Origin: Auanema rhodensis
Taxonomy: Eukaryota > Animalia > Nematoda
Length of the DNA: 64,000 nt
Assembly (NCBI GenBank): GCA_964057225.1
Contig: OZ059896.1
Span: 15,438,001-15,502,000, forward strand
Reading direction: 5' to 3'
Shown here: in pieces, positions 1,987 through 4,900 of the stretch
How positions within the stretch are numbered: position 1 is the first letter of the stretch
Layout: each line of letters begins with the position of its first letter
Position numbers and translations under genes: made by a program
The notes under the pieces: generated by a model
The model's input: only the letters and a program-made list of their open reading frames with translations
What the model was told of the DNA's origin: nothing
Database searches by the model: none

Positions 1987-4900
1987 ATGATTTTACTGAA
2001 ATTGAGTCTATTATTGATAGGCTTTAATGTAGTTAACGCTCGTACAGTTGATGTTAGATCCCGCATTGATTGCTACCCAGAACCGGGAGCTAGTGAAGCT
2101 CTCTGCTTGAGTAGAAAATGCATATGGGGGGCTGCGAGTAATGTAACAAGCAGCTATTTCACCTTCTTTATAATAACAACCGAAATGTTTCAGGATGATC
2201 CTATAGGTACACCATGGTGTTATTACCCACCTGACGCCGGTTATCGTATGGATCCTGATGGAAACCTATACCCACGTTGATATAACAATTAAATAAACAA
2301 AATAATGATAAGATTTATAGAATTTCCAAATCCATATGGAGATAATTTGATGCCATTAGTTTTCAAAGAAAAAAGTTATGGTGCCACATTAACTATTTCT
2401 ATTGGTCAACAAGGAAGGTCGATTTTAATACAAAATTAGAATTAGGATGAAAATATGTCTTGTAGATATGTCCCTCCTCTTGATTTACCCAAAAATCCTT
2501 CATCCTCGAATGTTTATTTCAAGGTGAGGAAATTGGCGATCCCCGAGACCAATACATTTGCATTCCAAGTATATCGCTCGTCTAATAATGCCATCGTTTT
2601 CGATACGACAATTGGTAAATTGTACAAAATAAAAAAAAAAGTTATATTTTAAGGTGGAATGTTATTTGCTGATAAATACATTCAAATAGCCACAAGGTTA
2701 CCCTCGAGTCATCTCTTTGGTATTGGTGATCACATCCATCATCGTTTGAAGGCGAGTTTTGATTTTTTTTGAGAAATATATTTTTTTATTATTTATGAAC
2801 AAAATTAATAACAAAAACTAATTAAAAACAAATTAAAAACAAATAATAATTTTTCAAAAAAGTGGAATACACCTAATACGGCTATAAAGGGTGGCATTCT
2901 TTTCAAGGACGCCCTAAAACGTTGGGCGCCAAAATAAGTTAATGCAGGCGTACACCCATATGAAATACGCTGCTTTTTCTGTGTGTGTTGAACACTGAAC
3001 GAGGATTCAGTATCGCTTCTCGGCCTTTTGGCTAAGATCAAAGTGTAGTAATCGTTCTTATCGAATTAACCTTCGATATGTGTTCCATTGGTTCACAATA
3101 AGGTTAACCGATTTTTGAGACCTGAGATAGATGCTGGCTTGCTAGCTCCATCTCACGGGTCGACCCGCTCTTGCACTGCTGGCGGGAACGGCCCATCCCC
3201 CCTGGGGGGAGAATAATACGGTTTATAATAAGGTTATAAAGATTTAGCTGCTGGTGCTTGAAAGCACAGAAAGTGATAACCTAATTTTATTTTCAGCATG
3301 ACCTTACTAGATACACTACATGGCCAATGCTTGCTCGTGATATCGCTCCTGATTCTGAAAGTGCTTTGAGTACTCAAAATCTGTATGGTGTTCATCCATT
3401 CTATCTAGGTATGTGTATGCTAAAAGTCCAAATGCATAGCTTTCCCCATTAGTTGTGGAAGGTGATGATAACGCTCACGGAGTTTTTATTATAAACAGTA
3501 ATGCACAAGTTAGTTTTCGAATAAATTTAAGTATTTGGTGTAATAATTAAGGAAATTACAACTGGACCTGGTCCTCATTTAATATATCGAACCATTGGTG
3601 GACAAATTGACATTGCGTTCTTCCCTGGACCTACACCAGAAGCAGTTATACAGCAATATATGAACTTCATTGGTACACCATTCCTCCCTGCGTATTGGGC
3701 TCTAGGATTTCAAGTTGAAAAAGCTTTGTTTGCTGAATTTAAGCTAATTCTTCAGCTTTGTCGTTGGGGGTACAAGGACTTGGATGAAATGAAGGCAGTT
3801 GTGGCACGTACTCAAGCAGCAGGCATTCCATTAGATATTCCTTATGCTGATATTGATTATATGAGTCACGATATGGATTTTACCGAAGGAGATGTATCTA
3901 TACTCAGAGAAATCACCGTTTTAATTTCTATTTCTTTAGAAATGGAGCGGATTTCCTGATTATGCAAAACAATTACATCAACAAGGTCTTCATCTCATTT
4001 TAATCTTTGATCCAGCAGTTGAAGTTGACTATGGATCTTTCCAAAGAGCTCTTGAACAGGTTTTCAATTGTATAAAGGCTAAAGGAACTGAAATATTTTA
4101 TAGAAAGTATCATTCATTGAATGGAGTAAGCCCAGTTTAGTGCCTGAAAATATTGAAGATCTGTATCCAATGGCTAATGGAACATTGGTATTTTACATTT
4201 GTTCCACATCCTGATCAATAAAAATGAAATAATAGAAACGTTTAAGATCATGTTGGGAAATGTGTGGCCAGAGCGTAATACTGCTTTTCCTGATTTCTTG
4301 GACCCTACTAACATCACACAGGCTTGGTGGATGTCAGAATTTGTTAATTTCCATAAGAAAGTGAGTCAATAAATAAGACAAAACTGGTTCAAAACTGTTG
4401 CAGTTGCCTTTTGATGGAATTTGGATTGATATGAACGAACCATCGAACTTCGATACTGACACTTATTCGCCAGTGGGTAAAATCCGGGCTAAGGCTCGTT
4501 TGGCTTGCCCTATCACTGGGCCAGATTCCGATCTAGATAATCCCCCTTATAAAACTCAAGCTGTAAGTTAAGTTTTATGTAACAGAACACTATTTTTCAT
4601 AGGTATATCTTCACGATGGGGAACAACTTTGTTCAAAAACCTTGTGTATGCTAGGTAAAACGGCTAGAAGAACTCACAGCTTCTATGATACTAAAAATTT
4701 ATATGGCTGGTCTGAAGCTAAAGCTACAGCTTCTGCTCTAAAGGCTGCAACAGGGAAGCGCGGTGCCGTTATTTCAAGGTTTGGAATTAAAATAAAAAAT
4801 TGTGTTAACTTGCAACTTATTACAGATCGACATTCCCATCTTCTGGTCGCTTTGGGGGACACTGGCTTGGAGATAATACTGCTCGATGGTCTGATTTACA

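Follow-up and report, generated by a model that had tools for sequence, protein, structure and literature searches.

What does it mean that a complete U2 snRNA gene of the nematode Auanema rhodensis departs from its family at the three bases directly 3' of the branch-point recognition sequence? U2 is the RNA that locates the intron branch site, and its branchpoint-interacting stem-loop (BSL) presents U2 to the intron. To our knowledge, few bases of any RNA are as strongly conserved as those just 3' of GUAGUA, which are nearly invariant across other eukaryotes. The gene lies in a stretch of 64,000 nucleotides (C4:15438001-15502000, hereafter the window) of an assembly of 180.9 Mb in 112 contigs, which we searched as a whole. 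Its AUC form is a variant of a known RNA, U2, and a string search of the literature that we covered did not find it.

The gene occupies positions 3012-3201 of the forward strand and matches the Rfam family RF00004 over the full model (1-192) with 147.7 bits and an E value of 2.2e-30, the gathering score of the family being 46 bits. The match is not due to chance. The features of the RNA that matter for the following are listed below.

3045..3050, + strand: branch-point recognition sequence GUAGUA, unchanged (sequence and Rfam alignment)
3051..3053, + strand: variant AUC where the consensus has UCU, U2 nt 40-42 (sequence and Rfam alignment)
3059..3078, + strand: stem-loop IIa, UAUCGAA ... UUCGAUA, both strands differing from the consensus (structure line of the alignment)
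3110..3119, + strand: Sm site GAUUUUUGAG (Rfam alignment)

Positions 3041-3064 read AAAGTGTAGTAATCGTTCTTATCG, aligned to the RF00004 consensus GUGUAGUAUCUGUUCU. Within this segment, 3045-3059 is GUAGUA-AUC-GUUCUU, with UCU in the place of AUC in the family consensus, and the wider context of the site is AAAGUGUAGUA-AUC-GUUCUUAUCG. The sequence UCUGUUCUU directly after GUAGUA is a conserved trait of U2, albeit one that the Rfam model does not require; here, 3051-3059 reads AUCGUUCUU in its stead, with GUUCUU retained. In the alignment, AUC at 3051-3053 is the sole unmatched block of the U2 5' half. The consensus is followed base for base, except at one unconserved position, by the 5' end, by stem I and by the GAUC region that pairs with U6. 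The Sm site, stems IIa and IIb, and stem-loops III and IV likewise align to RF00004, and the stems are paired; six of their pairs are marked as non-standard, of which four fall in stem IIb and two in stem-loop III. One additional A is present in the spacer preceding GUGUAGUA, which fits the nematode numbering offset described in PMC1276797. Canonical U2 RNAs (RF00004; C. elegans, human) therefore share with the window gene the full architecture, i.e., GUAGUA, the helix I region, stems I-IV and the Sm site, as well as a putative upstream element of snRNA type, whereas they have UCU at nt 40-42 where A. rhodensis has AUC. A first-pass annotation of the window had reported a U2 with ATC replacing TCT right after GUAGUA and with its other elements, stems and Sm site, intact; sequence and alignment bear out both points, and the gene end that it gave, 3196, lies only a few bases short of the model end at 3201.

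We then asked how the U2 family stands at this site in the rest of the genome. A covariance search, of which the best candidates were scored, yielded 47 full-length U2 genes on C1, C3, C4 and C8, and all 47 (46 extracted copies and the window copy) carry AUC, on four chromosomes. The 17-mer GTGTAGTAATCGTTCTT, which represents the AUC form, has 399 exact matches in the genome, and its canonical counterpart has none in the assembly. A canonical 18-mer with up to two mismatches gave 5 matches versus 14 for a reversed control, the two closest of them non-U2. Nor did the genome contain matches to patterns in which each of the three variant positions could hold a different base, or in which GUAGUA and GUUCUUAUCG were 0-2 or 4-9 bases apart. 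U2 bodies starting with ATCGTTCTTATCG number 774, which, set against 399 heads, leaves approximately 375 headless or interrupted bodies, and these likewise carry ATCG. Even the short, old and decayed U2 fragments derive from ATCG, some of them having decayed to ATTG, and the ancestral TCTG was found in none of the old U2 fragments and tails of the genome.

The AUC form is thus monomorphic across the A. rhodensis assembly, and it is not recent. DNA outside the assembly could still harbour further U2 copies. Twenty sequencing data sets, filed under at least six organism labels and several metagenome labels, share sampled U2 words with this family, the RNA-seq runs at 20-33%, counted as matches of such words. 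An assembly or sequencing error is scarcely conceivable, since the same bases recur in 399 heads and ~375 further bodies on several chromosomes and in differing flanks, retroelement junctions and decayed old fragments show ATCG too, and independent sequencing runs contain up to 87% of the sampled U2 words.

The first-pass annotation had left the choice between a genome-wide change, or fixation of ATCG across the U2 copies, and a specialised isoform confined to some of them. The former is what the counts show, with 399 AUC matches, no canonical one and no other form. The latter, in which a specialised U2 would serve a subset of introns beside canonical U2 genes, has precedents in the variant snRNA genes known in other animals, and canonical and variant U2 copies do occur together in Mesorhabditis spiculigera (see below). 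In these cases, such as human RNU2-2 or the M. spiculigera subfamilies, variant genes stand beside canonical copies, whereas in A. rhodensis the whole family is variant, with no canonical partner and no second form at the site in the assembly, neither among the scored genes nor among the pattern matches. This makes an isoform very improbable. U2 is indispensable, and as AUC is the only U2 form in the assembly, it should be the working U2 of this worm.

Does this hold for the window copy itself? Its surroundings comprise the following elements.

2752..3296, + strand: host intron, GC-AG, 545 nt, containing the U2 gene and its putative promoter (translations of the flanking exons)
2950..2969, + strand: PSE-like block and putative promoter element, GTACACCCATATGAAATACG (-62 to -43 relative to the U2 start), conserved among U2 loci
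3126..3126, + strand: copy-specific G-to-A in stem III (sequence comparison of U2 copies)
3195..3211, + strand: hairpin spanning the gene's 3' end, with arms UCCCCCC/GGGGGGA and AGAAU after it (-11.4 kcal/mol in context)
3220..3265, + strand: probable decayed 'headless' U2 tail (local alignment, weak)

The host gene codes for a trefoil and GH31 alpha-glucosidase protein on the same strand as U2. Its exons, each of at most 121 aa, were scanned singly and unjoined, which gave Trefoil and Glyco_hydro_31 matches, and their translations follow the GH31 motif order across the intron (...FGIGDH...RLK before it, HDL...WPMLARD... after it).

We compared the window locus with those of the C1 array, C8 and C3. 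Over the coding part, the window copy is identical to the U2 copies on C1, C3 and C8 at 185-188 of 190 positions (97-99%), whereas the 120 bases upstream are only 62-67% identical to those of the other loci, mainly in the PSE-like block and in the bases before +1. Most of the conservation within these 120 bases falls on the block, GTRCACNCRTATGAARTACG; it represents 20 bases at -62 to -43 kept in all four loci, and we call it PSE-like on account of its position, a proximal sequence element being expected near -55 in promoters of snRNA type. The few bases immediately before +1 also match among the four otherwise diverged loci. This pattern is the one that would be expected of a promoter element followed by a coding region that is constrained or gene-converted.

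The G-to-A change at 3126 bears on a stem III pair that is A-U in the window copy, G.U in the C8 copies and G-C in the C1-array copies. The arms of the 3'-end hairpin also co-vary, the C1-array copies having UUCCC/GGGAA, and this predicted structure may represent a signal for 3'-end formation. Downstream of the gene, the segment 3220..3265 aligns locally to U2 nt 78-135 with a score of 32, compared with 21.8 +/- 3.9 and a maximum of 36 for 200 shuffled sequences. The spacer GGGGGAGAATAAT (3205-3217) also occurs in C8 loci that have a head and an intact tail, and the window gene is probably followed by a U2 tail in decay.

One could take the window copy for a silent relic, the AUC-type U2 RNA being produced by the C1 tandem array and the intronic copy remaining untranscribed. 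A relic would suit a solitary copy that has a stem III version found nowhere else in the genome, sits within a host intron and is followed by a tail in apparent decay. Against this, the PSE-like block has been retained in an otherwise diverged flank, the coding part shares 99% identity with the C8 copies, and the single internal difference from the latter converts a G.U pair to an A-U pair. On balance, we regard a relic as unlikely. The reading that we hold with good confidence is that 3012-3201 is a dispersed, intron-hosted copy of the standard U2, that AUC is the only U2 state of this genome and belongs to its working U2 and to no isoform, and that the change has a putative origin linked to the retrotransposon Utopia (see below).

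The functional consequences of the AUC change are predicted ones. The RNA would be expected to work as an ordinary U2, since it preserves GUAGUA, the helix I region and the Sm site along with all of its stems. The variant bases belong to the extended branch helix and, within the BSL, to its 3' strand, and by position nt 40-42 of the worm correspond to human U2 39-41. In the human BSL, the pairs are 25-45, 26-44, 27.43, 28-42, 29-41, 30.40, 31.39 and 32-38 (PMC13019295). By analogy with these, AUC would break the equivalents of 29-41 and 31.39 in the upper part of the BSL and may turn the 30.40 mismatch into an A-U pair. Folding of a 22-base segment that overlaps 3036-3044, with the closing pair forced, gave +3.5 kcal/mol for AUC versus +2.4 for a UCU revertant; the fold is thermodynamically marginal in every version, and the difference carries little weight. 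A marginal stability of the BSL was likewise noted in PMC13019295. The real stability of this stem-loop depends on proteins and modifications.

Human BSL mutants provide the closest parallel. Those that lose pairs near the loop retain largely intact splicing, while the advantage of strongly complementary branch sites is gone (PMC13019295). In the same study, the mutants M5 (A29U) and M6 (G31U) break, from the opposite strand, the same two pairs as AUC. They are single changes of the 5' strand, introduced in an orthogonal minority U2, whereas A. rhodensis has a natural change of the 3' strand in all its copies, and its U2 has one spacer base more than the human RNA. The extended branch helix (U2 33-45), which is not bound by Watson-Crick rules (PMC13019295), is altered by AUC at three positions as well. 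The net effect to be expected would be a BSL that is slightly easier to open, so that strong branch sites would be told apart less well from weak ones. The suggestion of the first-pass annotation that AUC could loosen branch-site selection fits the behaviour of the human mutants.

The change also affects sites of pseudouridylation. C. elegans U2 carries pseudouridines at its positions 39, 41, 43, 45 and 46, and the equivalents of rat 41 and 43 are pseudouridylated in all mapped U2 RNAs (PMC1276797). In A. rhodensis, nt 42, the equivalent of rat 41 and yeast 42, is a C, so that the U is lost, and nt 40, the second C. elegans pseudouridine site, is an A. The AUC form differs in this from C. elegans, in which the U residues at its positions 41 and 43 are both pseudouridylated (PMC1276797). 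In yeast, a preprint reports that pseudouridines 42 and 44 of U2 in general promote splicing and are important for the recruitment of Prp5 (10.64898/2026.08.09.743773).

A compensatory change in U6 had been named in the first-pass annotation as something to look for. The U6 RNA of A. rhodensis, which comes from a tandem array with a 226-base repeat, reads GGAACAAUACAGAGA, and we found no compensating change in it. The predicted U2/U6 helix III amounts to -5.2 kcal/mol with AUC versus -8.8 with UCU, i.e., pairing is weakened and not restored, which argues against compensation by U6. As a candidate, we considered that AUCGUUC might restore a perfect helix III, which needs a U6 with GAACGAU; the A. 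rhodensis U6 does not contain this sequence.

How could an essential RNA accommodate such a change? The U2 of C. elegans lacks the otherwise universal pseudouridine of GUAGUA, which the authors link to the missing branch-point consensus of its introns (PMC1276797). By the same reasoning, the AUC change is probably tolerated in A. rhodensis because the introns of this nematode have no branch-point consensus.

Target-specific insertion, such as that of Utopia/Keno, has its general model in R2, which inserts in 28S rDNA. When Utopia/Keno inserts in U2, the downstream U2 piece starts at consensus nt 39, directly after GUAGUA (PMC4640811). A resident element is found in A. rhodensis, with a reverse transcriptase ORF of 671 aa (RVT_1, E 2.8e-20); it ends with ...CCATTA, followed by ATCGTTCTTATCG, giving the element/U2 junction ...CCATTA|ATCGTTC. 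The insertion point is the same as in the hosts described by Kojima and Jurka (2015, PMC4640811), and the variant bases 3051-3053 are the first three 3' of the insertion, or nick, site of Utopia/Keno. The first-pass annotation did not include this coincidence of the variant bases with the target site.

Although the insertion point is shared, the state of the target is not. The Utopia hosts in the supplement of PMC4640811 retain UCUG, as do two environmental Utopia hosts with arthropod-like U2, whereas in A. rhodensis the target bases are changed in every copy. Utopia nevertheless still inserts in AUC-type U2, as seen from the ~375 headless or interrupted bodies, all of which start with ATCG; therefore, AUC confers no present-day protection. 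The situation is reminiscent of cleavage-site alleles that arise with homing endonucleases or gene drives, which are small changes located exactly at the cut site in an essential, conserved sequence, with the difference that the invaded AUC bodies give no sign of resistance. The contigs that code for the closest Utopia proteins (P0001, P0002 and Diploscapter P0112) have no U2 on them.

A search with the reverse transcriptase protein led to an assembly of a second rhabditid, M. spiculigera (GCA_958295435.1), in which we analysed eight loci, seven of them with U2 sequence. As all of these loci were selected for their Utopia content, the sample is subject to ascertainment bias. Five forms of U2, all structurally intact, are present at the site.

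M. spiculigera U2 with GUAGUA-UCU, canonical (Rfam 145.9 bits)
M. spiculigera U2 with GUAGUA-UAA (Rfam 134)
M. spiculigera U2 with GUAGUA-CA (Rfam 126)
M. spiculigera U2 with the altered motif UUGUAGUU-UAU (Rfam 123.5)
M. spiculigera U2 with the altered motif GUUAGUA-ACU (Rfam 122.4)

In other U2 copies, the site is occupied by AA or by five to seven consecutive A. The headless U2 tails match the bases of the neighbouring full-length subfamily, and the Utopia junctions read ...TTAA|CAGTTC, |TCTGTTC and |TAAGTTC. The variant copies of this species may be dead. Disorder at this exact spot of U2 is thus found in both sampled rhabditid genomes and not in the other Utopia hosts that we checked.

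To place these forms in a wider context, metagenomes were scanned for U2 genes with a base other than U directly after GUAGUA. This gave 78 loci, nearly all of which are chance matches in coding DNA. Three are real U2 genes, with CCU, CCU and ACU after GUAGUA, and none of the metagenome U2 genes has AUC. The sequence after GUAGUA, which the first-pass annotation had called near-invariant, deserves that name, but in view of these three genes and of the several M. spiculigera forms it is not absolute.

We therefore considered how AUC may have arisen. The passage from UCUG to AUCG takes either three substitutions or the addition of one A at the nick and the loss of one U, and the insertion and deletion would be the simplest path. 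In such a scenario, the Utopia nick would have gained one A, and one U would have disappeared two bases beyond it, a lesion possibly resulting from abortive reverse transcription or error-prone repair. Concerted evolution would then have carried this footprint through the U2 gene family until all ~400 genes had the AUC form, in a nematode that, having no branch-point consensus, tolerated it. A retroelement footprint is a serious candidate because the site adjoins the Utopia insertion and because M. spiculigera varies there.

Ordinary drift under the relaxed constraint of nematodes that lack a branch-point consensus, with a position at the Utopia site that is coincidental, is a genuine possibility, though short of probable. 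The missing GUAGUA pseudouridine of C. elegans speaks for such a relaxation, a few other eukaryotes differ in the base that follows GUAGUA, and Utopia goes on using AUC targets in A. rhodensis. Drift would, however, call for three adjacent substitutions, which is less parsimonious than an insertion and a deletion at a known nick site, and the remainder of the U2 5' half is unchanged. Moreover, the M. spiculigera copies vary at the exact same spot, some of them with A-rich insertions typical of retroelement ends.

Altogether, the data favour a retroelement origin of AUC without proving it, and a link between AUC and a target-specific retrotransposon is plausible. That AUC is a Utopia footprint, tolerated and then fixed by concerted evolution, in which case a selfish element would have rewritten an otherwise invariant core sequence of the spliceosome, is a proposal that we make tentatively. 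If it is true, the U2 target site of Utopia-bearing rhabditids would evolve under pressure from the element, with A. rhodensis representing the fixed end state and M. spiculigera a polymorphic one. The coincidence of the change with the Utopia cut site, together with the disorder in Mesorhabditis, makes it testable whether a site-specific parasite reshapes an essential, conserved target. Irrespective of its origin, a change of the whole U2 family represents a natural experiment on how much of this conservation is required where branch sites have ceased to be recognised by their sequence.

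In the nematode Mesorhabditis spiculigera (GCA_958295435.1), U2 genes adjoining Utopia, a U2-specific retrotransposon that inserts directly after GUAGUA, show several sequence variants precisely at this point (loci L149 and L156-L162). The forms found there are UCU, UAA, CA, ACU, UAU, AA and A5-7, and in some of these genes GUAGUA itself is altered. The headless U2 tails in these loci, which lack the 5' part of the gene and start at the insertion site, agree with the neighbouring U2 subfamily. In Auanema rhodensis, an element of the Utopia type interrupts one unit of the U2 array on contig C1 (L145, C1:10998400-11005300); its RT ORF is 671 aa long. 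The unit of this array, of approximately 2.47 kb, additionally holds two 5S rRNA genes.

On two eukaryotic metagenome contigs, L092 and L097, GUAGUA is followed by CCU or ACU in U2. The U2, U4 and U5 genes of these contigs are clustered within a few kb, and the cluster of L097 also includes tRNAs.

Repeats with U2-derived sequence or snRNA genes in the A. rhodensis genome are located as follows:
Contig C3 at 9.61 Mb, contig C4 at 11.98 and 12.32 Mb: U2 mini-repeat loci (L165-L168)
Window 62173-64000: tandem array of U4 snRNA and 5S rRNA genes (Rfam search)

The mini-repeats, of approximately 55 bases, consist of U2 nt 40-78 and a short spacer within an AT-rich repeat, and ATCG has decayed to ATTG in some of them. 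The tandem array has a period of 490 bases, with one U4 and one 5S rRNA gene per unit; it continues past the window end at 64000. Within the window it has four U4 copies (three scoring 117.9 bits) and four 5S copies.

The U2 gene of the window lies within a trefoil and GH31 alpha-glucosidase gene on the same strand, in a GC-AG intron (2752-3296) whose donor reads AAG|GCGAGT and whose acceptor reads UUUUCAG|C. A hairpin followed by AGAAU spans the 3' end of the U2 gene (3195-3211), as it does at the equivalent place in the U2 loci extracted from this genome (L001-L046). Both arms differ together between loci, UCCCCCC/GGGGGGA versus UUCCC/GGGAA. This hairpin may be a 3'-end processing signal.
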